Positions 15,290-50,448 are shown, counted from the stretch's first letter. The stretch is DNA of 64,000 nt from Selaginella moellendorffii (GCF_000143415.4 NW_003314326.1:1061616-1125615); one strand, 5' to 3'. Numbers and translations: made by a program. Notes: generated by a model from the sequence alone, not told the origin.

Positions 15290-18200
15290 TACTCCACCTT
15301 CCATACTAGACCAAAATCCCTTTCTCAATGAAGTAAGAGTCTTTCTTTTTCCACCATGTCCTGTTGTTGGAACATCATGATATTCCTGCAAAAACAATTG
15401 TTGTAGATCCTTAGAGGGAAAATACAATCTTTCTTGCTTATAGAATATAAACCTATCCTAAATTGAGAAGTGAAGCTTTGCATTGGTTCAACTAGTAGCA
15501 ACTTTTGCCACTTCGCTACTAGTGTCCTGCTTTGACAACTCTGCGACAGTGCAAGATTGCCTTTGCCAATGGATCACTTCCATATGAAGCCCGAACATCT
15601 TCCAACTAATCCAAACTGATTGTTGATATTGCCCGAAACTAAGCCTGACAACTCAATGTATCCAGAACAATATTGTCTTTACCAAGTTTATATATGATTT
15701 CAATATTGAATCTAGCGAGCTTCTCTTGCCAACGAGTTTGCTTCAGCATAAGCTTTGGCTATATAGCAAAGTAGCTCAGTTTATTACTATTCATATAAAC
15801 CTTGGTATGTCCACATAAATAATGTCTCCAATGTTCCAAAGTTGACACTATAACAAACATCTCTTTCTCGTGCATTGCCCATTTGTGTTGGGTTTCGTCC
15901 AATTTCTTAGAGTAAAATGCAATGGGACAACCATATCACTTTAGCGTAATACTAATTGCTTTGTCACAATCTTGCTACAACACAGCAAAAATAGCATAGC
16001 TAGATGCATCACAATGCACTTCAAAGGGTTTATTAAGATTTGGGATCCTGAGAACAGGAACCATAGTCAAGATCTCCTTCAATAGTACAAAAGCACACTG
16101 ACAAGCTAGTGTCCAATGAAATGGTATACTACTCTTTGTTAACTCAATCAACAAAATAGCAATTCTTGCAAAATTGTGAACAAATTTGCGATAGTATCTT
16201 GCTAAACCAAAAAAGGAACGAACATTTGATACAGTGGTCAAAACTTCCCAAGACTTCACCACTTCCACCTTCTTTGGATCCACCTCAATCACGCTACCAC
16301 CAACTATATGCCCAAGAAAATTCATGCACAATTGTCCAAAACCGCATTTACTTTCCTTAGCATACAATTTGTGTTTACACAACTTTTGAAACACCAGCTC
16401 CAAGTGTTTCAAATGATCCTCTAACATTTCACTAAAAATTAGAACATCGTTAATATATAGGACAACAAATGTGTCCAAATAATTTCTGAATATTCTATCC
16501 ATCATAGTGCTGAATGTTGCCGGAGCATTACATAACCCAAACGGCATGATAAAGAACTCATAAGACCTGTACCAAGTCTTAAAAGCTATCATCTCCACAT
16601 CTTGATCTGCTACATGTATCTAATGATACCCAAATCGCAAATCAAGCCGCGTAAAATACTTAGCTTTTAAGAGATTGTCAAACATGTCATCAATGCGAGG
16701 CAAAGGATAACTATTTTTTACCATGACCTTGTTAAGTGCCTGATAGTCAATATACATCCTTATGGTTCCATCCTTTTTCATAAGAAAAAAGTCTGGCACT
16801 CTATAAGGTGACTTGCCTGGTCAGACATGACCTTTGTCAAGAAGCTCCGTGAGTTGCTTCTTAAGTTCAGCCATTTCCTTGATGTTTAAACGATATGGAG
16901 CAGTTTTGCAAGTGGTTTAGAACCTGGAATGACCTCAATCCAATGATCAAACTCACAACTAGGTGGTAGCCCTGGTGGTAAATCCTTCGGAAACATATCC
17001 TGATTCCTTGCCAACAACTCCAATATCTTCTTTGGTACAGGATCAACCCCATCGCCAATTCGAATTGAGTCACCAACACTCTCAGCTTCCATCACTTGAA
17101 CCCAAAAGGTTTGACATCCCTTTTTAGCTGCTTTTTGAGTGGCTCTTACAGTCAGGAACTTAGCATCCCAATCCTTTGAGGAGCGCTTTTGCAACTGGAA
17201 GGACACATTAAGATGTCCTTCTAATTTCAATGTGATACGACTTTGTCTAGCACCATAAATCCCTTTAATATATTTGTTGAAGAAATCTATACCAAACACC
17301 ATTTGAAAATCTGGTATCTTTAACATTACTAAGTCCACTCTTTCTTTCCACTTGGATATTTTATTGGAACATCACTCACAAATTTTCTGGCTACTTGCCC
17401 ACCTTCCGCAAATCGGAAGTGTATGGGTGACATCTGCTCAGCATTCAATCCTAACAACTTAACTAAGTCTTCAGATATCACACTGTTTGTAGCTCCCGTG
17501 TCAATCATCACTTGGATTTGGTGTCCACAGACAAAGCCTACTATATATATCAATAGATCAGTATTTGCATTGATTGCGAGAAAAGCTTGAGGAAAGCAAT
17601 GAAAGTAACTCATCTCCTTCTCCTCATAGTCTGCATTGACCAACTCATCAACCCCTTCATCTTCACCACCACCGTCTTCCCTTATAACATTAATACAAGA
17701 CCTTGTCTTATGTTTGTTGGGACATTCCAAGGATTTATGTTTAAACTCTCCACAATAGAAGCAATAACCCACACTACCCATTTTGCTAGGAGTAGGTTTT
17801 GTAGGTTATTGATGCTTGTACTCACCAAGAAGAGGAATAGAGAGCCTAGAACTAGAAAAAGCTACTGGTGGTCTCCAACCACCACCACCTTTGTTAACCA
17901 TTGTGTGTGAGCTTCTAGGGCGGAACTGTCCTTTCACCCTTTGTTTCCGATCACTTTGTTTATTCCCAAAATTCTTATTCTTGTCCAAGGTACTAGCATA
18001 TGGCTGTTGATATTGTTCCATGAGCGAGTGATTAAAGGAACTTGTTGTGCTACCTCCTTACACTCCAGGTACGTCTTTGGCTTAAACTTCAAAATCTCAT
18101 TGTGAGAAAGTGAATTTAAACCCTCCAAAAAATAACTTCAAGCATCTTTGTCACTTATATTTGCAATCATAATGTGCTTCTGAGCAAATGCATTAACGTA
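15290..18200 (-). pseudogene. Element B gag(3')-protease-RT-RNase H, decayed; most of integrase deleted
   Basis: CFYCGEFKHKSLEC zinc knuckle, IDTGAT protease, FIMPFGLCNAPATF and YINDVL RT, VHCDAS RNase H. Confidence 0.92.
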
Positions 18201-18608: not shown

Positions 18609-20740
18609 ATGGCAAAGGCAGGGCAGAAATGAACCAAGGCGGAGATGGAACCTCCTTCAGAGTTGGAGCCTTTGGTCGAACAAAAGGCTATGGATGAGGG
18701 ATCCATGCATGAGGAAGATTCCAGTGAGGAAACCTTCAAACAGGAGTCTAGTGGTGAGGTTCAGTCATCCAAGGCTTGATTGGACATTCTAGAAAGACAA
18801 TTGGCATAGACCAATGCCCTGCTGGAGACTCTCATACACAATCTAAAATGTGACGAGAAGCGGAAGAAAAGGCAAAAGACTACGGATGCTAGCAACACAG
18901 AAGGTGCGGACCCTTTGGTAGGGACTGAGGCAGAACCAAACAAGGTCAAACAGACCAAAGTGGAATCAGTCCCTCAGGCAGTTCCCAAGTACAAACTAAA
19001 GACCCCACCGGTCTTCAAGGGAGTGAATGATTATAAGGTGGTGGAGGATTTGTTTTACGATATGAAGGACTACTTTCGAGCATTGCAGTTACCGAGCTTG
19101 GAAAAGGTCTTATGTGCAAGACCATACTTGGCAGATAATGCCAAGTCTTGGTGGAGAACGATAGAGGCTAACGAAGGACTAGTGGCCACTTGGGAAATGA
19201 TAAAGGTGAGGATCCGCGCAACTTATGTTCCTCCGAATGCTACTCTGCATCTAAAGGATGAGCTGAGTAGGCTGAAATAAACTAGAACCATTCAAGAATA
19301 TGTGAATGGGTTTATGGCAAAAAGGATACTTGTCACAGATATGGGTGATATGGATGCGTTCTATGCCTTCATATCAGGCTTGCAAACCTGGGCTCGCAGC
19401 GAGGTGATGCGTTGGAACCCGACCAACTACAAGGAAGCGTTGGATGTGGCTATCAAGGTGCATTTCAATGATAACCTGCGAAAGAGGAACATAACGGGGT
19501 CGGAGTCCACGTTTAGCAAAGGGGCCAAACCAAGGGGAACATATAGCATAGGGAAATTCAAGAGGAGTTTCTCTAAGAATGAGTCCTCGGGTCGGGGTTC
19601 AGGAAAGGCAAATCCAGTGGCCAGTGAGCAAGTACGTGGGGGAGTCAAGTAAAAAGAGACAAACCCACAATTAAGAAGGTCAAGTTTGTTAGTAGTATGG
19701 GAAACAACATATGCTACAACTGCGGTGAAGCGGGACACTTTTCGAGGGAATGTCCCTACCCAAAGAAAGCCAGAGCCAATATGGCCATTAAGTCGGGTGA
19801 AATTCAAATTGAGGTATGTGATCTAGTCCCTAGCTCAAAGTTATTCATTACACAAACAACTTTGGTAGAGAGTCATTCGGGACATCTACTAGCCCTCTGA
19901 GAGAAGCTTGGAGGCAGCTTTGTTAAGATCCTTATTGACACAGGTGCTTCGGATAATTTTGTGGCTACAGACATAGTCCGGCAAGCCGGACTAACCGTGT
20001 AGTGGCTGGGTGAACCAAGGACGATAGAGTTTGTTCAAAGTAGCCAAAGCACCGATGAGATACTTCAACAAGTGAAAGTCAAAGTAGAGACATGGAAAGT
20101 AGATATGAATTTCACCATGTTGGACATGGCGGTATTTAACGTAATCTTCGGGATGGATTGGTTCAATCAATTTGTAGTAGCCCTGCATGGACAAAGTAGG
20201 AACCTTGTGGTACTGGCAAATGCCCGGGGAGAACAATCCAGAGTGGAAGCCTAGGATCTAAAGGTAGGGCAATATAAGGCCAAAGACTCCTACTTAAACC
20301 TGGTGTCCACGAGAGGACAATTCACTAAAGGAACGAAGGTAGCATTTTTATGCTTACTCTCAGTGAAGAGTGACAAAAAGACGGGAATGAAAGAAGTAAA
20401 TTTAGTGATCCAACGGATGTTAGACCAATTTTAGGATACCATGCTAGAGGAGCTACCGGCAAGGTTGCCTCTCGCACAACCGATAGAACACAAGATTGAG
20501 CTGGTCGAGGGTGCTAAGGTGGTAGTTTGTCCCCCCTATTGTTTGAATGAAAAGGAACTCGAAGAGCTCAAGTGCCAACTAGAAGAGTTGGTGGACAAAG
20601 GGTATGTTAAGTTGAGCAAGTCACCGTATGGGGCGCCAATGTTATTTGTGAAAAAGAAAGATGGATCTATGCACATGTGCATAAACTATTGGTTGCTCAA
20701 CAAGTATATAAAGAAGAACAAGTACCCTTTGCCAAGGATT
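18609..20740 (+). pseudogene. Element A gag-protease-RT(5')
   Basis: [39 protein letters not shown]...KYPLPRI; multiple stops. Confidence 0.9.
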
Positions 20741-20764
20741 AAGCTCTATTTCGTTAAAGTGGGA
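20741..20764 (+). repeat. Left TIR
   Basis: AAGCTCTATTTCGTTAAAGTGGGA. Confidence 0.97.
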
Positions 20765-21181
20765 ATTGTCATTATCCCACTTGTAAAATAAGGTTTCCAA
20801 ACTTTTATATAGTATATAAATATAACAAAATTCAACTGCATTGAGGCACATGCCATTTTATTTTAAACAAAGAAATGTCTACTCAATCACTTCTCACTGC
20901 TTCACCTCTCTCTTCTCCTTGTCATCGTCGTCCAATTTCTTTCCATCCTTTTAATATTGGCTCAGTTGCTCCGAGTCTAGGTGGAGCCCAAGTCCCCATT
21001 CAATCTTTACTTTCCCCTTATTAATAAAACAACTTCGTAGACTTCCAATAACATGCTGTAACACGCTGTAACACTTCTAGTATAATGCAAATCCTCTCAA
21101 AGAATTGTCTTTTAATATTAATACAATGGCATGGAACCCCATGCCATAATAAGTTACATTTTTAAATAAATACATGCCATC

Positions 21182-24100
21182 TCAGACTGTTATTTTTTGC
21201 CTCCAACGCCTATACAATAATCTTGGAATTTCATCACTCTCCACACTATCAGGATTTAAACCCAATAGTAATGCCATCTCTTCTCTAATACGTCCACGCT
21301 CATGTTCAGTGGTCGAAGAACCCATCCGGTTGAGCAGATTATGGAGATGCGGATAATGCTTGGCTAGACAATATACATGCCATAAATGATGACTGGTGTC
21401 TGTCCGATCAAATGGCTTCTGATATACCGTTCCATCTGCCATTTGGTTGATTTCTGCAGCCACCTCCTGGACTGGCCGGTTCTCTATCACCATCGCTTCA
21501 AGCCGTTTTGCAAGGTCCCCCAGAACATACGGTTTCTTCTCCCTAGTTTCCATACTGCAAGAGATGGGGTGCACTGCATATGTGTGCGTGTTCGCTGCAG
21601 TTTTAATCGGCGAGTCATCGATGATGAGGATTTCACTTGACCTAGCAGTCCGGTTCATCACTACAGCCTCTGCCTTGACGAAGATGGGCTTGCTACCCCT
21701 CACATGGACCATAATCAAGCAATCCTCCTGCGTTAGGAGAAAGTCAAATGGTAATATTACTCGCGTCTGATCGTGCATCATCTGTAGCAACGTTAATGCA
21801 TTGTGGCGCATCATGGATGTCCAAACTCCCAATTGCAAATTGAACCCGGCCCTCTGTTTTAAGTGTCGCATGGTCATTATTAGATCCCGCAGTTTCTCCC
21901 GTGTGATTAATGTGAATCTGTCTCTTTTGACCAACTTGCGACCGCAGGCTTTGGAGGGTGCAGTGACATTCGAGGACGAGCCACGCTCATGGGAGAAAAG
22001 GACACCGTTCAGATCAAAAACGATATAGTACTTTCGCCGTGACTCTGAAATGAAATGCGTTAGCATAAAAAATGGTACAAGTCAATTTTACCATCTACAA
22101 TATTAGCGAATGGTGCTCCCGATGGTCGTTGAGAGGGTTTTGGTCGAGGAAACGTGAAGGGCGGAAATACTCTCCTCTGCAATGTGGGGTCAATCGCATC
22201 CGATGGCGTGTGGGCACATGCCATTTCAGCTGTAGACTCTGGTACAACTGGCTCAACAGTGGCATGGGGTGGTTCCGATGGCGTGTGATCACACGCCATT
22301 TCAGCTGGTGCCTCCGTTGGCAAAGTGGACATGACTGAACAGGCAGCAGGGGCGGTGTAGGGAGGTTCCAACGGCGCGTAGTCAGACGATTGGGCACACG
22401 TTGGAAATGAGGATACGACCGGCTCGGCGGCTGGGGCGGCCTCATGCGGGTCCAATGGCGCCTGGTCACCGTCAGTTGGATACGTGGACAAGATTGACTC
22501 AGTGGTATGGGCAGCATCAAGTGGAGCGTGGTCAGCTTGCTTGGTGTTGATATGGATAGTAGCCTCCACCAGCTCTGATGACTCTTGCAGGCAAGTAGAG
22601 TCCACTGGCGGATCCATATGCATGTCCAAATATCTCCCTTCGATTGAGATGGTATCCTCCCGTGCTACTAAAAACAAACTCATTAGCACATTGAATCGAC
22701 TATACTGTATTTACCATCAACTGCTATTGAGGAACTAGGACCGATATCACTTGGGCGCACTGCTGATTCTGAAGGATTGGACATACGTTTCGACCCTTGC
22801 TTGGCACTATCCTTCCTCGACACTAAAGGCTAGAGTTTGTATCTTAATTCAACTGAATAATCTCTACTTACCATTTCTTCTGCGACCTACATGGACAATG
22901 TTAGAAATGGTAAAAGGTTAGGAATGGATGTACTATTATTTACCTGATGGTTTGTCTTGTATGACCTTCCTCCGCTGCTCTTTGGCCACCTCAGGCTGGC
23001 CATCATCGTCATCATCGTCATCGTCGTTATTGTGATCGTCACTATTGTGAGGACCATCCAAGTCCTCTTCGTCCTCCTCTTCTTCGTCCTCCTCTTCTTT
23101 GTCCTCCTCTTCGTCCTTCTGCTCTTCCTGCTCATTATCTTTCTCTGGCTCCTCATCCCCCTCTTGCATTTCTTCCATAGGCTGCTCAGGCTGGATTGCT
23201 TGTTTTTCCAGGACCATCTTGGAAAAATCATCTGGCCGAGTCTCCATCTCAAAATACAAGACATCCATAGCCTGTTTTAGTGCGTGACCTAGGACCGTAT
23301 CCTCACCCGACTGTCTTAACATGGTTTCTGCACGTTCTTGCACCCTTCGAAGACGACGAGATGAGAAAAACGTGGCCCTGACTTGAAAAGCATCCCTCAT
23401 CCATTGTACCTCTCCATTGAGATTGGGGAAGGGGAGTCCGCCATAGGAATCTGAGTCAGAAGGTGGTGACTGGCTCCTTTCACTCAGCCCTTGATCTGCA
23501 ATGAATGGCATGAGCACACACGCCATAACCGCGAGGCATTACCTATCATCTTTTCGTTGCCCTTCTTCCTTTTTGAATCAAACGCCTCTGATCCCGACGA
23601 CTGTCCAACGTGCTTTCGCTTTTTATGACCACTGTCAGTTTGAGCTTGGCTGGTGCTTGCCTGTTTTGCCTTTGAAGAAGTGTCTCCTGCAAGGAATGGC
23701 ATGAGACCACACGCCATTGCAAATATAATTTGTACCTCCTTTTTTCCTATTGCTTGTCTGTTTGTCCTTCTTCGACGCGCCACCAGTGCGCTTTTCAGTC
23801 CTCGTGTCTGAATATTCACAACGATCTATAATCAAAATGGCGTGAGGCCTCACGTGACCTTACCTTGTGCAGGTTGTGACCTCGGCCTAACATCAGTAGC
23901 TGTTAACGCCGTTTCAGCATCTGGGGGTGGCCACGCTCCTGCATACAGAGCTTGTGAGATAACATTTAAACTTAAAGTACGTACTCACCAGGTTCGTAGA
24001 GAAGATACTGTTTTTCTTTGGCAACTGTAATTATATGCTCCATTGAAGTCACCTCTTCAATGGAGTTTGTCACCGCAACACACGGGACACCCTTGAGTAG

Positions 24101-26449
24101 TGCGGCTCGAAAGAATAGTCCGCCGCAGTTGTACTCGACAACGCATTTGCCCTTGGAGTCACCCGCTATTGCGTTGAAGACCCAGCTGAGCATTTCCCAT
24201 GCTGCACCTAGAGCTTTCTTTGGATTCGAAAGCTCCATAGCCGTCTTCAGTTCCTCAGGCACGGGTAAATTGACCTCCCTCAGATCAATTCGATCGGCTT
24301 TGTTGAACGAAGCTGGGAAGTCACTCCAGTCCCACTCTACTGCAGGACCAATAACAAGGGCGACTGTGAAGATGCGGACATTCGTCGGCATCTTCTTCTT
24401 AGCCATTATCCCATGGATCTCCCGCATCTCCTTGCCTTTCAACCGAGCCTTCACCTCGTTCAAGGCCTTCCAGAACTTGTGATAGGATTCGGAGTCGTAG
24501 ATCATATAGTGGACTGAAGATTCCACCTCCGCAAGTCCCACCATTAAGTCAATGATGGAGCTGACTTCGTCTGCATGAGTGATCTCCTCGTTTGTGAAGT
24601 CCATCACACAAAAGATGTTCTTGACCTGCTCATCTCCGCGGGAAACGATGCTCCTCCACCTTTGATCCTCATCCGAATTCACGTATACCCGGTAAGGTTC
24701 TCGATAGGCCTCTGCTGCGGGGTCGAGCTGTTTCTGAAGCCGGCGGTCGACATCCCTCTTAATGAAATTTGGATACTGATCCAACTTCTCAGCTTTACTT
24801 TTCGTGGCATCCCGCAGCAGATCGATGAACTTGGGGGCCCCCTTCACGTACTCGTCGATGTCTTCATTTGACAAGTCCAGCTCTTCCATCATCTCTTGCG
24901 TGGTGTCGATGCTCACCCTCGCCACGGCCACTTGCTCGAAGATCCAATCCTTCAATAGCGCACGAGCTCTCAGAGTCGTGCACAAGTCCTCGTATGTCAC
25001 AATATGGCCGGGAGTCATTTTGGTCTTGTTGAAGACTACCTCACCACGTAGAAGAGCATTAGCCACTGTCAGAAGGTCGTCGTCGTCTAGAGACCGCGAG
25101 AAACGCAAGGCGTTGAGCTTCAAATCATTGGGCTTCCGGCCGTCCTCCACACCCATTGAGTTTAGCAACTCCCCGTCATGGTACCTCCTTAGCACATCTA
25201 CCCATTTGTCAAAAACAACTTTTGTCGCGAGTAGAATGTTATGGATGCTGAGTGTGTCATTGACCCCCAGTGTTTTCGAGAGAAGACTCGAGAATTCCTG
25301 CAATGGAAATGGCGTGAGGCCACATGCTATGCCACATGTAACGAGGCTTACCTGCCAAGCGCTAGTTGCTAGTGCACGTCCTTGTCCTGGTTTTTGTGGC
25401 TTCTTCAGTTGAACCCAGAGCTTCCGTGTTCGTGCCAATATCTTGTGCAGACCCGATTTGTAGCACGTTTCTTGCTTGACATTCTGCGCGTGGGAGATGT
25501 ATATGATAGATCGGAGGGGCGAGTTGCCTTTTATCAGGCGGACAACTCTTGTCTTGAAGACTTTCTTCACCTCCTCGCCCACCATAATATCCACAACTAT
25601 CTGTTGCATCGCCAAGCTAGAATGCTGCTCGGAGACGGCATAGAACCGGATGTTCTGATCGTCCAACACCTTCCTATTGATCAAGTCTGGAAACCTCGTC
25701 TCGCCCTTCATTGTTCGGTAGTAGGGGATCACGTCTGCGATGTCGGGTGTTACTGGACTTGCCAGCATCTTCTGCTTCAGTTTCTCCACCCACTCATCAG
25801 ATACTAGCCTGTGGTTGTATTTGCTTTGGATCTCGATACGGCTCACGTCGATTGTATATACTTTGTTGGAATAGTAACAAGTACTATTATCTGCGACGAT
25901 TTTTGCTGCCTCTTCTTGCTCTTTCTGCTCTTTGCGGCTCTTCTTTTTGGTGGGTGTAGTGTTCGAACCCGAGGCAATGGCATCACCGAGTAGCTTCTTT
26001 TTTGGAGCAGCAGAGTCGGACGTCAGCTTGAGCTTGACCACCCTTTTCTGCTTCGGGGTAGTTTCCAGATCGACCCCCTTCCCCTTCGCTTCGCAAACTG
26101 GAGGCACTCTCAACGGCTCAATGTTGGAATATAGTTTTTGAACATCGCCGTAGGTGAGGTCCGTGGATTCCATGTGATCTTCATAGACCCGCAGCGTCTT
26201 TGAAATTGTGGGCCTCCTGGACAACCTCTCCCTAGCTCCCTCTGGGAATTCCTCATAGCCGCTGCCCCCCTCCGGGAAGCCGCTAGGATGTGCAAGGTGG
26301 ATCTTGAAGGCGGACGCTGTCTCTACCACAAGTGCCAGTCCATATTCTTGCATGGAACTGCATGGAGTGTCTGTCACTTGGATGAGGATCCCCATGCATT
26401 CTTTTCTCCCACCATCTGTGTTGTATAGCATCAGATCCTTGCCTTCCAT
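21182..26449 (-). CDS. Transposon accessory protein, ~1600 aa: ParB-like, MTase-like (degenerate), acidic/basic linker, FCP1/SCP-like HAD phosphatase
   Basis: Nine GT-AG introns (25298-25351, 23939-23988, 23808-23863, 23687-23735, 23496-23542, 22887-22943, 22823-22871, 22668-22714, 22045-22091) join the ORFs into one stop-free frame; motifs FYAVSEQHSSLA, VVEYNCGG...AALLKG, IVFDLNGVL/VWTS/IIDDSPIK. Start codon uncertain (further upstream introns 26485-26531, 26590-26635). Confidence 0.75.
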
Positions 26450-26759
26450 CCCGAAAGTCCAACTGGTGAGCTCCTCCCCCTTCTCTGCATCCACATTGAC
26501 AGTGGCTGGAAGAAAGACCTAAAAGACTTACCATTTGAAGCCGAATGGAGGCCGTGACAATCGAGGCCGGACTCGCTGGCGAATGTGCACTGTGTGTGCA
26601 GCGGATCGTAGCAGCAAGGCTACTCTGCCACTTACAGTTGGAGAGTGGTGCTGAAATCTCCCGGGACGCCAAGTGGGCTGCGTGTGGGTGGCGGAGTGGG
26701 CGGCGGAGTTGGCGGCGAAGTTACAAACTGGGTGTGTCTTGAAGTGGACGCCGATGCAC

Positions 26760-26922
26760 ACGAGCGCGATGCGAGCGCGAGTGTGATGCAAGCGCGAGTG
26801 GACGCCGATGCACACGAGAAACCTGTAGAGAAGTGAGCGTGATCGTGAGTGGGAGCGCGATGCGAGCGGGAGCGCGAGTGTGATGCGAGCGCGAGCGCGA
26901 GCGCGAGTGTGCGAGCGCGAGT
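26760..26922. repeat. CpG-rich (GCGA/GCGCGA)n low-complexity tract in the divergent promoter region
   Basis: GCGAGCGCGAGCGCGAGTGTG repeats. Confidence 0.8.
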
Positions 26923-28135
26923 ACAAAGCAAAATGCAAAACCTAACCTCACACGCGCGAAATGTCACAACGGTTGGTAATCCCGCCACGTCATCATTCCT
27001 CGGACTTGGGCGGCACCATTAATTTCTGGATTGCCGCGCGCATGCAAGCACGCAAAATCCAAAAGAAATCCGCAACGTCATCATTCCTCGGACTGCATGC
27101 ACGCGAAATCCAAAAGAAAGATCATGATTGGGATATCATTTAATACCCTCGCTATATTTATACCATGCATGATTGGATATTCCAAAGCATCTTGTATTTC
27201 CAAAAATGGCAGATGTTCAGCTAAATAAAGAAATTCTATCTGTTTCTATTTTTCTCTCAAATCAATATTATAGCGTGTGGGCTCATGCAATTTTGAACCA
27301 AAGAAACCCAAAAAACGTTGGACCCAAAATATTTTGAAAAAACCCAAAAAACCCTAAACATTTTAAACCCAAAAATCCAGGCGTCCTGTGGCGTTATTCC
27401 TTGAATGGCGTGTGGGCGCATGCCATTTTCAGGGCCAAATGCTGAATGGAGAAAAATTCCCTTTCAGTGCAAATGCTGCAAGAGGCAGATGCCGAGCACA
27501 AAGGACTGTAACTACCTCACATGACACAGATAAACTTTTCTCTATTTGGCAAAGATAAACTTTATAGCGTGTGGGCTCATGCAATTTTGAACCCAAAAAA
27601 TGCACTAAAAAATTCTCGGCGTCATCTGGCATTATCTCTTGAATGGCGTGGGGCCGCATGCCATTTTTAGGGGCACATAGGAGTATATTCCTAGGATATT
27701 CTAACACGCGCGAGATTTTTTTGAGTTTTCTGGAGATCCAACCGTTAGATCGCAACTAGATTTTACAGAATGGTATACAATGTCTTTCTTGATGACCCTG
27801 CAAAGAAGCATCTCGATCGGACACCACATGAGACCACACGAGCCTTACAATGTTTCAGGGGCATTTGCCATAGATCCGACCGTTATTTTGCTCCAAGATT
27901 TTACAGTTTGGTGTGCATTGACCTTTCCATCGAAACTGCAAAGGGACATCACAATCAGATGCGGGATCACAAGAAACTAACTTCACTAACTCTGGTTTCA
28001 CCAAGATCTACGTAAGGAGTTATGAAATGAAAGGACCCTCTATTGAAATGTGTTTATGGTCCTAGGGGCATTGTGACATATCAAAGGATTTTGCATCAAG
28101 TTCTGTATTTGCATGTTTATCAAGCTACTGAATTG

Positions 28136-28169
28136 CTAAACCCTAAACCCTAAACCCTAAACCCTAAAC
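28136..28169. repeat. Interstitial plant telomeric repeat (CCCTAAA)4+
   Basis: CTAAACCCTAAACCCTAAACCCTAAACCCTAAAC. Confidence 0.95.
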
Positions 28170-29499
28170 ATGTGGCAAATGCTGCGTGAAGAAAGATGCC
28201 CTTTCTGGGCAAATGCTGTAAGAGGCAGATGCCGAGCAGATGTATCTCAGGCTAGCGAAGGGGACGAACGAAAGCTAGCTATAAACATGACGGGATGCAA
28301 ATAGATTACTAGGCTGGTCCTACGAAAATCAAAAACCATAATTGAAAACATTGAAAATGCAAAAAGAAAGGTTTATAATATTTTTGAATTTTAGGCAACC
28401 AAAGGAATGTAAGTAGGGCATGTGTTTGTAAGTTTAAAAATGCCTCAACCACTTAAATTCCCAAGTAAATAAAGCTGTTTCTATTTTTGGTACAGGTAAA
28501 CTTTATAGCGTGTGGGCTCATGCAATTTTGAACCCAAAAATGCACCAAAAAATGCTCGACTAGCATTATTCTTTGAATGGCGTGTGGCCTTATATTGCCA
28601 TAAATGGACGTACACACACAGCATAATTATTCCTTTACACGGCGAATAATCTTGGCGCGGATCGCTGACATGGCATGGCAAAGTTCGAATCACTGACATG
28701 GCACAGCTGGATCGAGGCAAGGACATGATGTGACAAAGTTCAACCTCCGACAGCAAAGTCTAGAAGCTACTCAGTTTGAAATTTGTCAGAGGAATCATAA
28801 GATCTGGTTTGTCAGAGGATTTGATGTGACGTTCAAGCGTGTGTTATTTTTGAATTCTCGAACTCATTCCTAGGTCTATCATTTTTGTGCGCCGTGTTCT
28901 TGGTTCCGCTGAGCGCAGTGAGCGCTGCTTGTGTAAGCGGCGTTGTGGGCTGTGGTTTATGCGTCTACGAGCGGTTGCGGCATTGCGAGCGCCATTGCGA
29001 GCGGTAGTTTATGCGAGTGGCAGTTTGTGCGAGCGGCGCTACGAGCAGTTGCGGTGTTGCGAGCGGCGCTACGAGTAGTTGCGGTGTTGCAAGCGGCACT
29101 GTCTTTGGTGTGGCTACCGCTTCCTCTTGATATTCGGCACTTGTGCTTCCTGGTATGTTCACCATGGAATGGCTTAGGACCACATTTAGAAATGGCATGA
29201 GGCCACATGCCATCTTGGGCCCTTGCAATTTCATGGCTAGCGTATTGTCATGTATGTTTTTACTTGCCTGCAGCTGTGTGTATATCAAGATGGCATGAGG
29301 CCTCATGCCATTAGTGGTACCACTAATGGCATGAGGGCTCATGCCAATTTTGTGAATGCGAAATTTCACGTGGGTGTCAATAGCATGTTTGAATAATGGC
29401 ATGTGGCTTCATGCTATTGAGGTTGTTTGGTATGTTATGATTTAGGCCATTCTCCAATCATTTTTTGTATGGTCTTAACTTCTTTTCTGCACTTTCAGA

Positions 29500-32400
29500 A
29501 TGGCCTTCAGGGTTGGGGAAAAGGTTTACATTTTGAATGGTGGGAAGAGAGTTGCAAAAGGGACCCTTGTGTCTATGGATCGGAACTTTGTTATACACTG
29601 TGAAAGGCTTGGGGAAGGCAATGCTGCTGTATCAGTAGAGACTGTCTTCGATGGGAATGTGGTCGCTATTGAACGAGGAGAGATGGTCGTCGGGGTAAAT
29701 GTTGTTGTTGCCTTGAAAAATCTTCAGAAGAAAGCAGATGTTGGGGACAGCGCAAGTGCGACGCATGTTCCCTCCGTGGATCTTAAGAACCGTGCTACAT
29801 GGATTCAGGCAAAAGTGTTTCTAAACAACCCCGAGGGGGAGGTGGTAGCTGAGGGCTTAGCCACAGTTGTCGATCCAAGAGATGCGGTTGCTAATCAAGA
29901 ATTGGGCTGGGATGATATTGGAGTTGTGATTTTAGAGGTTGTTGACACAGAAGAAAACAGTCTGACTATTGGAAGCATTGTGCGGTGGAAATTGAGGCAC
30001 TTAGTGTTTGAGAATGTGAAGGATTCACAATCAAACACCACTACAACTGATGACAGAACATCTCTTCATGGGAAAAGAAAGTACACCTTCCTAAAGCGCA
30101 GCCAAAGGGATCTGAGCAACGAACCGAAAAGGCAGAAAATGGCGATGGAGGTTCGAATGGTCTCGACAGTTGCTTGTTGCAAGAGGAGGTGCTGTCAACA
30201 TGCTGATTGGGATGCTATTGAAGAGGAGAGAGCAAGATACAAGACATTGTCCTGGAAGGCAGCTCGCAATTTTGTGTATGAGGCATTACGGTCATCTGTT
30301 GATGCTTCAGAACATCAGGTGGGGGGCATGGTCTTCCAGAGGGGTTTGGTCTGCATGAAGGCATGGAGAATCATTTATGGAGTCCCTCGAACCACATTCT
30401 ACAGAATCAAAACTGAGTTCGAGGAACAAAGGGTTCAACAGGCAGTCCATGGGAACGACGGTACGCACAAAACCAGGGGTCATGTTGTATATGGAGAGGC
30501 AATCTTCAAGAGGTTTGTCGAGACATGTAGCGAGCAGCAACCACATAAAACCCGCCTCTTGGAAGATGGAACATGAGACACCCAACGAGTTCTCCCTTCC
30601 ATGTATACCAAGGGGGCCATATTGGAAGATGTGAATCGGGAACTCCAGAGTAATGGCTACAAGAAGCTGAGCCAATCTAGATTTAGTAGATTGTGGAGCA
30701 ACAGGTTCAGGGATGTGAGTATAGGAAAGTACTCCAGCTTTTCAAAGTGTGACGAGTGCACTGTTATCAAAATGGCTTTGTCGAAGAATTCTTGCAGCGC
30801 TCAAGAGCGAGAGACGTTGGTTAGAAGGCGGCTCGACCACAACATCGAGCAGAGAAGCTGCAGGACTGCATATTATCATAACAGGATTCTCTCCATGGAG
30901 AGACCTGACTCTTACCTCTGCATTATCCACGACAAAATGGACCAGAAAAAGACGTGCTTACCTCGACTCAATCCTGCCCCCAAGGCAATCTCTTCATCCA
31001 TGCAGCTGCCTGTGTCTCTGTTTGGCATAATCGCTCATGGGCATGGTGCCCAGAACTATGGGAACTTCTTTGTACGTCTATGGGGTGGCGGGGGTGCAAA
31101 CATGATGATTGCGTCCCTAGCAAAACACTTAAGGTCTCTGCAAAGTGCGCAGACTGAGCTGAACGGCCAACCCTTGCATAAGGCCCTTGTCGATCGAACC
31201 CCATACAGGGTTCAGCTGGAGGAGGAGCAAAGGCTTGCAGTATCGCGTGGGGCCCCATGCCATCCCAGTGAATATGTTGGCCGTCAGATTGTAGGGTTAT
31301 CATGTGAGGCCTCATGCCATTCCGACGAGGCTGGTCGCCCGGTGAATGCACAGCCTCATCCAAACAAAGCAGAATCTCAAGGAAGTTCTTGCGGCTGATG
31401 TGGCCTTCCACCCCATCTTCTGCTCCAAACAGACAATGCTGGCAGTGAGAACAAAAACATGTACGTCTTCGCGTACTTGGCGATGCTTGTTGCCAAAGGC
31501 ATATTTGAAACGGTTACACTTGGCTTTCTCATGGTTGGGCACACTCATGAAGACGTCGATGCCATGTTCAGTCACCTGGCAGAGTCCCTCCGGCGATCCA
31601 ATGTCCTCACCCTCCCACAACTCTACGATGAATTCCAAAATTGCATCAAAGGCACTGTTGAAGCTGCACTTCTGACAGAGGTTCCAGACTTTAAGGGGTT
31701 TGTAAGAGGCTACATCAGGGATGGATCCGAAACGCTGATTGGCCACTCCAAGCCTCTTCAGTTTCATTTCAGCATGTGTGACGGTGCTCCAGTGATGAGG
31801 TACAAGATGAGAGAATGGGACACAGTGTGGCTGCCAGTGGACGGCATTGAACTCTTCAAGAGAGATCCCATAACTGGGGAACCTATGATTCCTCAGGGTT
31901 CCCCACGGCCGATGCACCCGGATGGACTCAAAGACTAGGAAAGTATAGTGCCGGGATTAGACAGCATATTGCCTTCTGGAAGAGGGGGTTGGTGTTTGGT
32001 GGAGAATCCTATTTTCAGAGGTGCAAGCCTTTGCTCGAATACTGGGAGAAGATTATATCTGCTATCCAAAATGGGCCAGTTGTATATGAAGAATTGGAAG
32101 AGTCCTTTTGGCCAGAACCCAGAGCACCAGATAGTAGCGGAACAATGTCCTCTGGAAATGCAGTGACAGATAACGATGTTGAGGATCACTATTGTGGGCC
32201 GAGGAACAAGAAGCCGGATTCAGCATTCAATCCAGTACAGGTCTGCAAAGGAATGGTCGTGCTTGTCAGACCCAGTAATAAAAAACAAATGATATGGGTG
32301 GGGCGCTGCATCACTGATGCAGAGGAGGATGCGGAAACTAACTCCTTCAATGTAACTGTGGAGTGGTTCAAGCCAAGTTCCGGATATACGAAGGATTGCC

Positions 32401-32640
32401 TAGAAAAGAGATGGGTGCTGAATCCAAGGGATCCCAGCATGAGCATATCGGTGGATAATGTTGTGCATGGTTGGATGCGGAAGCAGAGTGCCACCATCAC
32501 CTTGCCAGACCATGCAAGAGATGCAGCAAGAGCATTCATAACTCGGGTTCAAGGTGAGATTCATTAATATTCCTTTACAAAGTTTCTAATGTATTTTATT
32601 TCAAGGTGAACAATCCGAATCTGAATCAGAGGAGGCTTGA
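29500..32640 (+). pseudogene. Sola1-like DDD transposase, ~1030 codons, disrupted
   Basis: One frame through stops at 30574, 31396 and 31936, then a frameshift near 31950; motifs FSKCDEC, IIHDKMDQKK, LQTDNAGSENKN, FLMVGHTHEDVD; terminal intron 32554-32605; probable 5'UTR intron 29153-29498. Confidence 0.85.
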
Positions 32641-32855
32641 TATAGTGTGTGAGGTAAAACAAAGATGATGTGACATATGCATTTACCAATCACACGTGCA
32701 TAAATCTAATAATATGGCGTGTGGCCCATATTAATGGCACATAAACCCATATTGTGGGCTTACGTGCTTTATGTACCATCATTCCCTTGCAGCGTGTGTG
32801 TTGGTTTCCTTTTATAACACAACGAACTCCATATTTTAGGGTGAAGAGCGTTCTC

Positions 32856-33113
32856 ATGGCAAGCACAAAATCTGTAAGTGAGGCAAAAAAGGAGACGGAG
32901 AAGGAGATAGGTGAAGATGTAGAATATATAAGTCTTCCAAACTCCCCGTACTATACTCCAGGTGATCATTTTTCTGAACAAACGGCAACATTAACAACTA
33001 TCGAGAACGCCCCAGTAATGTCAGAGACAACAATCCAAAGCAAAACAACTGACCCGGAGAAGGATGATAGTACCGCTGAGAGTACCAAAAAGGAGGTGTC
33101 CACTAGCGCTTAG
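32856..33113 (+). CDS. Small unknown ORF (85 aa) near the right TIR
   Basis: MASTKSV...VEYISLPNSPYYTP...SETTIQSK; homologous to the ORF-a copies at 7507 and 40144. Confidence 0.45.
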   Translation: MASTKSVSEAKKETEKEIGEDVEYISLPNSPYYTPGDHFSEQTATLTTIENAPVMSETTIQSKTTDPEKDDSTAESTKKEVSTSA

Positions 33114-33749
33114 GCTTATAATGGCGTGTGCCCTCATGCCATTTACTTGATCACCAAATACCTTTTTCCCTTTGCACTAGTATATCTTAATACCGGTCTG
33201 AGAAATAGAATGGCATGTGCCCTCAGGCCTTTTACTAAATCACCTTTGAAAGAAATGCAAGCCTCTATGTCGTAAAAAAAAGGTACTAGAGAAATTCCTT
33301 AATAATATGAATGTTATTTAGTTTCATGAAAATACACTAAGGGTCAAATGAGTTAAATGACTTCTCCAGACTAGCAATGCCTCTTGCTACACCTTCACAA
33401 TTAGATTCGTTAGAAAAAGATAACATTGAATAATATCTAAATGTTCTCACCATTAAGTTATATGTCTGGCTAATAGGAATGATGTTCATCTTGGAAAGCT
33501 CACCACACGCTCAATGAACAAACAAATAGTGTGTGCGCGCATGCCATCGCTCTTCTTTAGCTTCAGATTCGGCTTGTTCACCTTGACAATGAGATTTATT
33601 ATACAACTAGATGGACTCAGTCTGGACATAAGGTCACCGCGCTAGTCACCATGCCCCAGATATGTCTAGCCCCTGGACAAAAAACATATAATTTCACGTC
33701 ATTTTCAAATACTTGAAAATTTGTACCTAGTCCCATTTTACTGAATAAA

Positions 33750-33773
33750 TCCCACTTTAACGAAATAGAGCTT
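33750..33773 (-). repeat. Right TIR
   Basis: TCCCACTTTAACGAAATAGAGCTT, exact reverse complement of the left TIR. Confidence 0.97.
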
Positions 33774-36360
33774 GATTGAGGACCTGTTCAATAGGTTGGG
33801 AAATGCAAAATACTTCTCGAGGATTGACCTAAGGTCGGGATACTACCAGATCAGGGTAGCAGAGGAAGATGTCGAGAAGACAACCTGTCGAACAAGGTAT
33901 GAGAGCTTTGAGTTTCTGGTGATGCCCTTTGGGCTATGCAATGTGACAGTAATGTTTTTGGCACTGATGAACCACATCTTTGTATCTTATCTAGATCACT
34001 TTGTGGTTGTCTATATTGATGACATCCTGATCTATAGTGAGACGCTAAAGGAGTATGCCGAGCACTTGACAAAGGTGTTTGAAAAACTAAGGGAACACAA
34101 ACTATATCCTAAAGAGAGCAAATGCGACTTTGCTTAACAAAAGGTAAAGTTTCGCATGTGGTGGGCTAGGATAGGCTCAAGGTGGACCCTAAAAAGGTCC
34201 AAGTGATCCAAGAATGAGAGCAACCATCAAATGTACATGAGTTGAGGGCGTTCCTGGGACTATGCAACTACTACCAAAAGTTTATCAAACACTATTCAAG
34301 AGTAACCCTACCTTTAACGGACCAAACTGGTAAAGGGAAGATGGTATAGACAATGGAATGCAAGGCGGCATTTGTCCACCTTAAAGGGAAGTTGAGGAAG
34401 ACACCCGTGTTAGCATTACCCGACTTCGATAAGGACTTTGAGGTAGAAACAGATGCTTCAGACTTTGCGTTGGGCGCAGTTTTGAAACAAGACAACCATT
34501 TAGTGGCGTTCTTCTTGAAGAAGTTGGACAAGGCTCAACGAAAGTGGCCTACCCACGAGAAAGAATTATTTGCGGTGGTCAAGGTGCTGAAGGAGTGGCG
34601 ATACTACCTTGGGAGGCACTTCAAAGTTTACATAGATAATGTGGCAACGAAACACTTTTTGTCACAACCTGACCTAAGAGGGAAACAAGGTTGGTAGGCC
34701 AGTGCTTTGGCTGAGTTTGATTGCGAGATTCTGTATAAACCTAGGAAGAGCAACATCGTGGCAAATGCTCTAAGTCGAAAAGGAAGCTTAAAGTTGGTGA
34801 TATCTAGCGCAACAGCAACCTTTTGGGACAATGTGCGAACAGTGTATGAGAACAATGGTCTAGCACAAGAAGTGTCGCTGAGGAACCAAGAGGTGCGAGA
34901 AGCTCACCAGAGAGGTGAGTTGCCAATAGAAGAGAAAACAGGTTATGCAAAACGCAATGGACTCATCTATTATAAACAAACAAGGGTGTACGTTCTAGAA
35001 GGGGAACTAAGGAAGATAGCCTTAGAAGAGTGTCATGACGGATTTCTTGCAGGCTTACTCAAGAGGAAGTATCACTGGCCAGATATGGTTAAAGACGTCC
35101 AAGACTATGTAAAAACATGTCCAACATGTCAGCAGGTCAAAGCCGTGACTAAGGCTAGTGGGGGCTTGTTACAAAGCATCCCAATTTCAGATCGGCCGTG
35201 AAAATGTCTTACAATAGACTTCATCATGGGACTCCCCTCAAGCAAGGGATTCGATGCGATATTCGTGGTGGTGGACTGATTTTTGAAGATGACACATTTT
35301 ATACCCACCACAACGGAAGTGGATGTGAAAGGTGTGGTGAAACTATTCTTCAAACAAATGGTTCGAGTGCGGGGAAGGCCAGAAGAGATCATCTCAGATC
35401 GAGATAAGATCTTCACTAGTAGGTTCTGGAGAACTCTCCTAGAATAGTATCACACCAAGTTGAAATTCAACACAACCTATCACCCACAGACAGGTATTGG
35501 GTATTAAGTCAAGTTTGATGGCACTAACACTTCTTGACAGATGGACAAATGGAAAGGGTGAATAGGCAGTTGGAGGATTATTTGCAATGCTATGTCTCGG
35601 GAGACCAGACCGATTGGGTAAGTCATTTGGGACTTGCAGAAATGTGCTATAACAACTCACCACACTCAAGTATCGGGGTGAGTCCATGGGAAGTCATCAA
35701 TGGGCGAGTTATTGAAGGTCCTGTGGAACTCAGTGTGGTCGAGTATCATGGAGAGTTACCTGCAGTGGAGGCATTCACAGCGGAAAGACTCAACATTTGG
35801 AATCTAGTGAGGGATTTCTTGGAACGAGCTCAACAAAAGCAAGCCAAATACGCGAACCAGAAGTGCCAGGATGTAGAGTTCCAAGCTGAGGAGAAGGTGT
35901 GGCTGAACACCAAGAACCTCAGGCTACCAAGTGGGATCAGCCGGAAGTTGACCCAAAGGTAAAAATGCATGTATTCTTGTAAATGAATTGATCTTGAGTT
36001 CCTTAAGCAGGTTCGTGGGGCCTTACGAGATTGAGTCACGAATTGGTAAAGTGGCTTACCGTCTCCGACTTCCTCGAGAGATGGGGATGATGCACCTAGT
36101 GTTCCACATGAACTTACTCAAGCCATACTTTGAGGATCCACTTCGCAAGGACCAAGTAAGACATTTACTTGAGGTTATCCAAAGGGAGGAGGAATACGAA
36201 GTCGAGGGCATCCTCAATGCACGCAAGAGTAAGCAATAAGGACGCGAGGTGAGAGAGTTCCATGTGAAGTGAGAAGGATTTCCATACTGCGAAGCAACAT
36301 GGGAACCAAAGGAAAACCTAGCAAACACATAAGATCTAGTGGAGGAATTTCTGCAAGGCA
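33774..36360 (+). pseudogene. Element A RT(3')-RNase H-integrase-chromodomain
   Basis: IDLRSGYYQIRV, YIDD, ETDASDFALG, CPTC, ISDRD, YHPQT|DGQMER, R|FVGPY, EYEVEGIL...ATWEPKENL; two intron-like inserts. Confidence 0.92.
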
Positions 36361-48589: not shown

Positions 48590-50448
48590 CCGGGATCTGG
48601 AGGAACGTCAGGAGGAGGCATCGGCAAATCTGTAGGTGGTATTAATTGCTCATGATCCCTTTGTATGAAGCATTTCAATTGCTACATATGCACAATCTCT
48701 AGAGGATTGGTCTGTTGGACGTCATGCCAAACCTCATAAACTTGTGGTCCAACTTGCCGCAACACTCAATATAGTCCTTTCCACTGTGCAAAACACAAAT
48801 AAACCACGTACCATAAGATAGGGAAAACGGACTAACACTAAATCATCCACTTTGTACTCTATAGGTGGACCATGATGGGAGTTGTAGTGTCATTGTTGTC
48901 CCACTTGTACGTGGCCTAAGTGTTCGGTAAGCTCTACTTGGACAAATGAAAAAATGCTCTTCAAATATTGATCCCACAACCTAGCATTGGCAGTTCGTGG
49001 CAATCACGAAGGTAAACCCAACTCCATTGGTAATATTGGATCATGACTATATAGGAGTTTATATGATGAAGCATCAACAGAACTCTGCACACCTGTGACA
49101 TATGCATACTAAAGAGACGGCAAATAACCATCCTAATCCGAATGCTGAAAGTTCATATATTTCGCAATCATCCCTTTGAATGTCCGAACAAGCCGTTCCA
49201 CCAGACCGTCTGATTGTGGATGATAAGCACTCGTGAAAGTGTGGTGTATTCCCAACCGAGACGTTAAAACATGAAATGCCTCAGCCATAAATGCGGGACC
49301 ATTATTTGAAAGAATCTGCTCTAGACAAGAATGTTGGAACACCACTCGATTGACGAGGAAGTATCCAACAGCAATTGCAGAGGCACTAGCAAGAGCACCA
49401 ACTTCTATCAAATGAATCAAGTAGTTAGAAGCAATAATAATATATTCATTGCCAGCATTTGATCGTGGAAAAGGTCCCATAAGATCAAATGCCACCAACT
49501 TAAATAGACGAGAAACTGCAATTGACTCTAACCATCCTTTTGCAACACGAGGGGGAGTATTACGAGCTTAGCACTAAACACAGCTACGCACATACTAAAT
49601 AATATCATGTCACATCTCCGACCAATAAAGGAAAGACCTTCGTAGTTTCTTGGTTATACGACGATGTCCTATATACCACCTAGAACAGGAGAATTATGGT
49701 AGGCATGGAGAAACCACGGAATAAAGACAGAGCACTATTAGCTATAAATGATCATTAGGATCCGTCCCCACAAAATAAAGAAGGCTATTTTCAAAATAAT
49801 GTTGAGAATGTAAATGCCGGAAAGGCAAATCATCAACAAGTGATGCAAGATTTTCAAACCCATCTCGAAGCTTTCGAATCAATGGCTCAATCTTTTAAGC
49901 CTTGCGAACCTCATCAAGAGAAGGTAGATCTTGCTCTGCACCTTATGGACACTAAACGTCAAGTACAACAACCACCAATGGCACATAATCCTCGTTTAGA
50001 AAATCCACAGATGCCGGAACAATAGGCTCGTTAAAAATATGAGAAAAGAGTGGAGAAGGAAGAGGAGCTTGAGAAAGGGCATCAGCATCAGCCATAGAAC
50101 TCCCTGGGCAATGAACAACATCAAAACATATATCTGAAGCTTCAAAGCTCATTGAGCAGTACGACCAACCAAGTTTTTCCGCTTCAATAATGAAGTAACA
50201 ATAGCATGGTCACCTTCAAGTAACGTCCAAGAACCATGTAGATATGGATGAAGTTTCTCAAAACCCCAGACTACTGCAAAACACTCCTTCTTTGTCGTGG
50301 AGTAATTCACCTCCGCTAGTTGTAATGTATGGCTTATATATGCAATGGGATGGTGCTGACCAAGCACACTCAAGCTCTCTTGCATCAACACACCTCCAAG
50401 ACCAATGTCAGAAGCATCCACGCGCAAAATTAAAGGTCGAGTGTAAGC
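48590..50448 (-). pseudogene. Element D RNase H-integrase
   Basis: VDASDIGLGGVL, FDLMGPFP, SNNGPAF, SAYHPQSDGLVER. Confidence 0.88.

Follow-up and report, generated by a model that had tools for sequence, protein, structure and literature searches.

A Sola1-group transposon of Selaginella moellendorffii with a putative ParB-like accessory gene and dispersed private palindromes

Ends, insertion site and transposase of the element

The 64,000-nucleotide stretch of Selaginella moellendorffii DNA analysed here (GCF_000143415.4 NW_003314326.1:1061616-1125615, hereafter the window) contains, at positions 20741-33773, a 13-kb element that is a real cut-and-paste DNA transposon of the Sola1 group. 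It carries two divergent genes, one for a transposase and one for an accessory protein with a predicted ParB-like domain, together with a set of palindromes private to the element. The element is bounded by perfect 24-bp terminal inverted repeats (TIRs; sequence AAGCTCTATTTCGTTAAAGTGGGA) at 20741-20764 (plus strand) and 33750-33773 (minus strand), identical at 24/24 positions, with no such inverted match expected by chance, and by a 4-bp target-site duplication (TSD), GATT, read directly at 20737-20740 and 33774-33777. At up to three mismatches, the TIR sequence has two matches in the 64-kb window, both at the element ends, against an expectation of 0. Removal of the element together with one GATT restores a continuous reverse transcriptase (RT) reading frame, in which ...YPLPRI is followed directly by EDLFNRL. 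The left part of this interrupted frame lies at 20441-20740, and its continuation at 33778-34134 (plus strand) matches Pfam RVT_1 (E = 4.6e-23, profile positions 62-192); the element is therefore inserted within the reverse transcriptase domain of a Ty3/gypsy retrotransposon. Direct reading and the RVT_1 match thus bear out the perfect TIRs, the GATT duplication and the clean empty site (PLPRI joined to EDL) given in a preliminary description of this DNA. The CpG observed/expected ratio is 0.72 within the element and 0.30 and 0.46 in its flanks, which, together with the perfect TIRs and TSD, suggests a young copy, yet one that is unable to move autonomously.

The transposase gene (29500-32567, plus strand) is an intronless pseudogene of about 1020 codons, whose open reading frames (ORFs) match Pfam DUF7869 (E = 1.6e-40). 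It includes a CCxxxCC/helix-turn-helix (HTH)-like region, from 30175-30195 onward, and the catalytic motifs IIHDKMDQ (30922-30945), QTDNAGSENKN (31426-31458) and GHTHEDVD (31537-31560), all on the plus strand. An intact 1075-aa relative, P0069, aligns colinearly with the window from 29515 to 32552, and the gene therefore lacks introns and its interruptions are damage. Introns, considered as an explanation of the interruptions, are ruled out by this colinearity, and the stops are mutations. Reading of the codons on the plus strand gives TGA at 30574-30576, TGA at 31396-31398 and TAG at 31936-31938, and the frame shifts by 1 nt near 31950-31960; in P0032, a database protein of 253 aa with 99% identity, the sequence runs on uninterrupted past the positions of the last stop and the frameshift. 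Compared with P0069 and P0032, the gene thus contains three in-frame stops and one frameshift and is not intact. Two divergent large genes are present, as described. P0069 itself is a seemingly intact Sola1-type transposase encoded on a 3792-bp Logan contig, with 34% overall identity to the window pseudogene, and indicates that active-looking members of this Sola1 lineage exist. Two segments of the window transposase are common to P0069, an N-terminal one (GEKVYILNGG..., 29500-30100) and a C-terminal one (VCKGMVVLVRPS...IWVGRCITD...VTVEWFKP, 32200-32450); they resemble small domains of the reader type, rich in beta structure, and Pfam has no match for them. For the transposase core, 38 database relatives were found at about 35-60% identity, and among relatives the N-terminal region is conserved over aa 217-357. 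A word-indexed homolog search with the 358-aa transposase N-terminus gave no matches.

Assignment to Sola1 was made by comparison with the curated transposase of the Ectocarpus element Sola1-1_Ec32, the sequence of which was taken from the supplement of PMC12477816. BLASTP of the window core against the Sola1-1_Ec32 core gives 44% identity over 72 aa (E = 7e-22), in an alignment that spans QxDNxxxENKN and MVGHTHxxxD; the first Asp motif, IIHDKMDQ, was set against MMDGANQ of Sola1-1_Ec32 by eye only. Published Sola2 transposases (PMC3627910) resemble the window transposase at the motif level only. A Sola2 identity, first favoured from this motif similarity, was dropped, as the Sola1-1_Ec32 core matches far better. 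Because of the core match and the 4-bp TSD, a defining feature of Sola elements (PMC10741241), and with the Sola2 likeness confined to motifs, the transposase is classified by its sequence as a DDD-type enzyme of Sola1. The membership in Sola proposed in the preliminary description is thereby confirmed and narrowed to one of its groups.

The accessory gene and its protein relatives

The accessory gene lies on the minus strand and comprises a frame open over 840 codons (23972-26494) and, after it, an acidic ORF (22936-23526), a Pro-rich ORF (22060-22689) and an ORF encoding a NIF/FCP1-like domain (21182-22066; CTD-phosphatase-type, HAD), which would be the last large exon. The order and strand of the acidic, Pro-rich and NIF ORFs suggest that they may be exons of one mRNA together with the 840-codon frame. 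The low-complexity middle of the gene (22060-23526) holds palindromes at 22203, 22278 and 23505, and the acidic and Pro-rich ORFs in it are separated by stop-rich DNA that is probably intronic. The 840-aa ORF itself divides into a ParB/Srx-like domain (d1, 25349-25927), an all-helical domain (d2, 24725-25297) and a C-terminal alpha/beta region (23975-24724) that had been labelled methyltransferase-like (MTase-like), a label that is unconfirmed. At the d1/d2 junction lies an in-frame 54-nt GT...AG insert (25298-25351), which carries a palindrome at 25309-25330 and is absent from the S. moellendorffii paralog P0039; it may be either a short intron or a tolerated insertion.

Proteins of this kind are very rare. 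Among 1.84 billion representative proteins, searched exhaustively with HMMER, there were 10 matches, of which 3 are low-complexity noise and 7 are real relatives, and these relatives define two modules, d1 (about aa 190-382) and d2 with the C-terminal region (about aa 400-840). A word-indexed homolog search with the 840-aa ORF gave no matches; the same ORF, profiles of d1 and d2, the NIF ORF and the C-terminal ORF of a related contig (L014, described below) gave noise only when searched against the sequences of the PDB. The d1 family consensus is F..SGQHS..AAK, with one member reading DGQHT and the window copy reading SEQHS (25619-25636). Searches of Pfam and NCBIfam with d1 detected no ParB family, and only DUF6551 at E = 0.14. 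At the level of predicted structure, the first 35 Foldseek matches of d1 belong without exception to ParB, Noc, PadC, Srx, KorB or Atu1540 (best E = 3.5e-3), and the top five matches of VIA, a search independent of Foldseek, are PadC (Z = 6.0 over 99 residues, root-mean-square deviation 3.2), pNOB8 ParB-N (5.3), KorB (5.2) and Srx (4.7 and 4.6), with the other ParB/Srx-fold proteins SspE, BrxU, SbnI and Atu1540 ranking lower. Because these two independent aligners agree, a ParB/Srx-like fold is accepted for the d1 model with moderate confidence. The d2 domain, with homologs in P0039, P0042 and P0046, is modelled by AlphaFold as helical with a predicted local distance difference test (pLDDT) score of 65-91 over model residues 1-193, and neither Foldseek nor VIA gave a convincing fold match for it.

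The C-terminal region contains a strand / Gly-rich loop / helix / strand element that is conserved in the window copy, P0039 and L014. In the region corresponding to S-adenosylmethionine (SAM) motif I, L014 reads VLDFFSGGMG...SFVES and P0039 IVEYGCGG...VLVET, both Rossmann-like, and the window copy reads VVEYNCGG...VAVTNS (the stretch VVEYNCGG...VAVT is encoded at 24053-24142); the strict pattern is not matched. This element could be a relic of a Rossmann-type domain. Pfam has no match to this region, up to E = 10, in the proteins of the window, P0039 and L014, and motif IV of beta-class N4/N6 DNA methyltransferases (PF01555), (D/N/S)PP(Y/F/W/H), is absent from all nine family sequences. Neither Foldseek nor VIA gave a usable fold match for the C-terminal region, and no methylase appeared among its fold matches, this part of the model being unreliable at pLDDT <50. 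The NIF domain (PF03031) scores 24.4 bits against a cut-off of 21.8 (E = 2.6e-5). The ParB/MTase/phosphatase protein of the preliminary description therefore stands in part: the ParB-like fold has modest support, the NIF domain is present with a degenerate catalytic motif, and the methyltransferase is not supported, a profile match and motif IV being absent.

The S. moellendorffii paralog P0039 (SELMODRAFT_409495 / LOC9650508, 451 aa) is encoded at L003:10001-11425 (S. moellendorffii GL377575.1), and a further copy lies on a different scaffold. Its identity to the accessory protein is about 25%, and its gene neighbours encode SCAR, ArfGap and VQ proteins, with no transposase or palindrome array nearby. 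From its sequence and setting, P0039 may be either a domesticated offshoot of the accessory gene or the source of a capture.

Palindromes in the element and in related loci

The palindrome ATGGCRTG-N6-CAYGCCAT has 22 matches at up to three mismatches, all within 20835-33547, against an expectation of 0.68 over the whole window; in 100 shuffles the count never rose to 22, and the 51 kb of flanking DNA contain no copy. The preliminary description had put the number of copies of an element-specific palindrome at about 23, which agrees well with this count. The 22 palindromes start at 20835, 21126, 22203, 22278, 23505, 23696, 23837, 25309, 27270, 27405, 27564, 27643, 28505, 29192, 29290, 29326, 29396, 31242, 31299, 33121, 33210 and 33526; 11 of them are exact to a stricter core pattern that is likewise confined to the element. 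The full consensus is about 24 bp long, AATGGCRTG-WGGCCW-CAYGCCATT. Of 44 half-sites, 29 read ATGGC[A/G]TG, and half-site variation is almost only that of GGCRTG, suggesting constraint and base-specific reading. The homology-supported coding sequence, which makes up 43% of the element, contains no palindrome (P about 4e-6). The highest density, 2.95 per kb, is found in the intergenic region between the divergent genes (26450-29499), which holds 9 of the 22 palindromes, and four lie at most 310 bp upstream of the transposase ATG. Several of the intergenic palindromes are within local 30-78-nt duplications, and some copies have arisen through local duplication. The palindrome does not resemble the TIR and shows no concentration towards the element termini.

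Other palindromes accompany related genes elsewhere. On the 6.9-kb contig L014, from another sample, homologs of d1, d2 and the C-terminal region occur in order, together with a different palindrome, CAACGCSGCGTTG, present in 26 copies against an expectation of 0.01, which include a 26-bp tandem array at the 5' end of the accessory gene and two copies in the d1-d2 gap, the same junction at which the window gene has its palindrome-bearing 54-nt insert. A further contig from another sample, L004, encodes d1 and then d2, and the combination of d1, d2 and C-terminal region thus recurs at 24-31% identity on contigs from other samples. The accessory gene is therefore not a one-off capture, as had been maintained in the preliminary description, the same architecture being found on L004 and on L014, the latter with its own palindrome array. 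In the liverwort Calypogeia fissa, a locus around CBCUJL010000001.1:56.74 Mb (L001) contains a fragmented related transposase gene amid 12 copies of yet another palindrome, ACCTCGCGA-N3-TCGCGAGGT, which extend over 15.5 kb, where none is expected. In L016 and L017 the palindrome arrays are weak or tandem only. Judged from these sequences, private palindrome arrays are a recurring trait of this transposon lineage, with a sequence that differs between sublineages, the pattern expected if the sites co-evolve with an element-encoded DNA-binding protein.

Candidate readers of the palindromes and comparison with known systems

The explanation that best accommodates these observations, and which we regard as moderately probable, is that of a dead two-gene Sola1 copy whose palindromes are docking sites for an element-encoded DNA-binding protein. 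One gene is that of the DDD-type Sola1 transposase, the element having inserted into a gypsy reverse transcriptase gene, and the other would encode the ParB-like accessory protein, with an effector part composed of the helical domain, an unidentifiable alpha/beta region and the CTD-phosphatase-like (NIF) domain. The 22 private palindromes would be cis docking sites for a dimeric protein encoded by the element, and docking would allow the family to recognize its own copies and to act on no others. Transcriptional or chromatin control would be the likely effect, nine of the sites lying in what would be a bidirectional promoter region. Binding, the identity of the binder and an effect on silencing or transcription are inferred here from sequence. 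As the binder, we slightly favour the ParB-like protein, regard the transposase as a possible but less probable candidate, and leave the remainder to structural or other roles. The ParB-like protein is somewhat preferred because a ParB-like domain followed by a helical domain matches the order found in ParB, and because the L014 array abuts the accessory gene and parallels exist in the algal literature. Moreover, a palindrome that is unlike the TIR and spread over the element suits a protein that marks or regulates better than one that recognizes the ends.

Several results weigh against this explanation. The AlphaFold model of d1 is of low confidence (pLDDT 54), and no member of the whole family has, at the corresponding position, the arginine of the ParB nucleotide-binding GxxR / DGQHR-type motif. 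Motif I of the phosphatase-like domain is FDLNGVL, with DxNxV (codons GAT CTG AAC GGT GTC) instead of the catalytic DxDx(T/V), the second Asp being replaced by Asn in the window copy; given this motif and the broken transposase, the sequence makes it unlikely that the window copy is functional. At the liverwort locus, no accessory homolog was found by tblastn, d1/d2 profile hidden Markov models (HMMs) or a motif scan within 10 kb on either side, or by hhalign against the four largest other ORFs, and reverse tblastn gave the transposase as the only protein common to the window element and this locus. Four other metagenome contigs with related transposases (L002, L006, L012 and L013) have no clear palindrome array.

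The liverwort locus provides an argument for a possible alternative, which we consider doubtful on balance, that the palindromes are the transposase's own sites, recognized by its CCxxxCC/HTH-like N-terminal region for autoregulation and/or transpososome assembly, with the ParB-like gene an unrelated passenger. There, 12 private palindromes surround a related transposase and the accessory gene is undetected, leaving the transposase alone common to the two loci; the four palindromes immediately upstream of the transposase ATG and the conservation of aa 217-357 in relatives also suit this alternative. However, the palindrome neither resembles the TIR nor is enriched at the ends, and internal high-affinity sites scattered across 13 kb would be in competition with synapsis of the ends. 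The tandem array of L014 lies at the 5' end of the accessory gene, as in the red-algal PAG3 described below, and the ends of the liverwort element are not located (no TIRs with a 4-bp TSD were found), such that an accessory gene may lie farther off or act in trans. A second alternative is that the palindromes act as nucleic acid structures, as transcript hairpins or DNA cruciforms (small-RNA precursors, silencing targets or recombination hot spots), or represent a tiny palindromic parasite. The symmetry extends over the whole 22-24 bp, the WGGCCW centre among them, which would allow a hairpin of 9-11 bp, and several copies lie in transcribed, non-conserved segments. We nevertheless consider this very unlikely, as the occurrence of unrelated palindromes of similar length in different lineages fits co-evolving protein recognition better, and the restricted half-site variation points to base-specific reading. 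An independently mobile palindrome is likewise unlikely, with 0 copies in the 51 kb of flanks.

The remaining alternative concerns the accessory gene itself, which could be captured host DNA of the Pack type with no role for the transposon. This would agree with the S. moellendorffii paralog P0039, which has only d2 and the C-terminal part and sits among ordinary genes with no transposase nearby, and with the degenerate effector motifs of the window copy. By contrast, the architecture of d1, d2 and C-terminal region recurs at 24-31% identity, on one contig full of private palindromes, and this recurrence with element features indicates long-term retention and argues against a recent functionless capture. 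The family is also nearly absent outside such contexts (7 true matches in 1.84 billion proteins), ParB-like accessory genes are found repeatedly in algal transposons, across several superfamilies, and the 840-aa ORF is still open though the adjacent transposase has three stops. A functionless capture also seems very unlikely.

The closest counterpart of the window element is the Ectocarpus element Sola1-1_Ec32, a Sola1 element with an opposite-strand gene for a ParB-like/DNA-methylase (N4/N6) protein, which its authors propose to bind and modify its own transposon (PMC12477816). The two have in common a giant size, a 4-bp TSD and an opposite-strand accessory gene encoding a ParB-like domain and a further domain, and, by eye, a pre-catalytic Cys-rich region and an FxRxW...C..C region of the transposase. 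Sola1-1_Ec32 is larger (21.5 kb) and has 282-bp imperfect TIRs, compared with 13 kb and 24-bp perfect TIRs in the window element, and its accessory protein has a recognizable N4/N6 DNA methylase, which is not detectable in the window protein, where a NIF/CTD-phosphatase-like domain is appended instead. The parts of that report that were examined describe no palindrome array for the algal element, and the likeness of the accessory proteins is one of description. In red-algal Plavaka elements (EnSpm/CMC), PAG3 combines a weak N-terminal ParB-like domain with a 2-oxoglutarate (2OG) oxygenase and is adjacent, in several families, to tandem inverted-repeat arrays, and PAG2 combines an N6 methylase with a SET domain; the idea of self-binding and self-modification, and the comparison with VANDAL elements, are stated there by Petroll et al. 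2025 (bioRxiv 10.1101/2025.02.11.637652). The window element resembles the PAG3 system, again by description, in the fusion of an N-terminal ParB-like domain to an effector and in the inverted-repeat arrays, but PAG3 belongs to another superfamily, has a 2OG oxygenase as effector, and has its repeats in tandem beside the gene, whereas those of the window element are mostly dispersed over it.

More distant parallels are found in other systems. In VANDAL elements of Arabidopsis (Mutator), the accessory protein VANC, which serves anti-silencing, binds short motifs that accumulate in the non-coding DNA of its own family (PMC5735166). Family-specific motifs in non-coding DNA, expanding by local duplication, are common to both systems, but VANDAL is a Mutator element, VANC is unrelated to ParB, its motifs are non-palindromic, and its function is demonstrated, whereas a function of this kind in the window element is suggested by analogy. 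The bacterial pairs ParB/parS, Noc/NBS and KorB/OB share with the window system a ParB/Srx-like fold followed by a helical region, and palindromic sites of about 16-24 bp present in multiple copies on the encoding replicon. The window family differs in being eukaryotic and nuclear, in having neither the GxxR/CTP-binding signature (SGQHS in its place) nor a partition ATPase, and in a structural similarity of Z 5-6 only. The Sola2-Fanzor elements of dictyostelids (Bao and Jurka 2013, PMC3627910), which measure 12-15 kb, end in TIRs of 12-22 bp, have 4-bp TSDs and contain another ORF of very large size, are comparable in layout, but belong to Sola2 and carry a TnpB-like Fanzor1 as cargo, with no palindrome arrays reported.

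In view of Sola1-1_Ec32 (PMC12477816) and PAG3 (bioRxiv 10.1101/2025.02.11.637652), the statement of the preliminary description that this architecture had not been described does not hold: it was already described in algal transposons in 2025, and the window element extends the design to a land plant. Not found in the literature consulted are the land-plant host, the lack of a recognizable methylase and the CTD-phosphatase-like effector, the dispersal of palindromes over the whole element, including one within a short intron-like insert, and the finding that a relative carrying the accessory gene and one in which none was detected each have a private palindrome of their own. No mention of private palindrome arrays was found in the Sola literature consulted, and they are seen here in at least three Sola1-type or accessory gene-bearing loci. 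So far, reports of ParB-like accessory proteins in transposons of eukaryotes come from brown, red and green algae. The element family would extend these proteins to a vascular land plant, replaces the usual DNA-modifying effector by a CTD-phosphatase-like domain, and pairs a ParB-like protein with countable candidate cis sites that differ between sublineages. The hypothetical self-addressing of transposon DNA thereby becomes directly testable, with one palindrome and two candidate proteins. Though the window copy is dead, the family lends itself well to experiments on these accessory proteins of transposons, a class that still awaits explanation. A more specific version, to which we give a low probability, is that, in a Sola1 lineage of non-seed land plants, the ParB-like protein docks on about 20 private palindromes and brings to the element a CTD-phosphatase-type domain that tunes the activity of RNA polymerase II/IV/V or silencing, and does so at its own copies alone. 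If true, this would be a self-addressed regulatory system distinct from VANC and from the algal ParB-methylase proteins.

Other repeats and domain combinations were observed at related loci. On a Logan contig from ERR5554644 (L015:59-3941, GC content 32%), the d2-family protein P0056 is followed by a same-strand ORF with a SET domain (PF00856, E = 4e-5), a combination that recalls PAG2 of red-algal Plavaka. Just downstream of a distant DUF7869 gene, L017:11164-12221 contains a tandem array whose units measure about 151 bp and each include the inverted repeat ACCTTGA-N8-TCAAGGT, possibly a private repeat system of another kind. L006:2700-5200 (and also L007-L011, all AT-rich metagenome contigs) contains, upstream of a DUF7869 gene, a CT-rich, tandem-like, non-palindromic array with a period of about 55 bp, TCTCACTCTCCCTCTCCC...CCCATT. 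In the window, separate gypsy-type RT segments occur at 329-742, 16113-16760, 33775-34319, 50164-50346 and 51528-51932 and match RT-like ORFs of the liverwort locus; with these scattered segments, the window is therefore a nest of retrotransposon copies. Their CpG observed/expected ratio, 0.30-0.46, is far below the 0.72 of the Sola1 insert.

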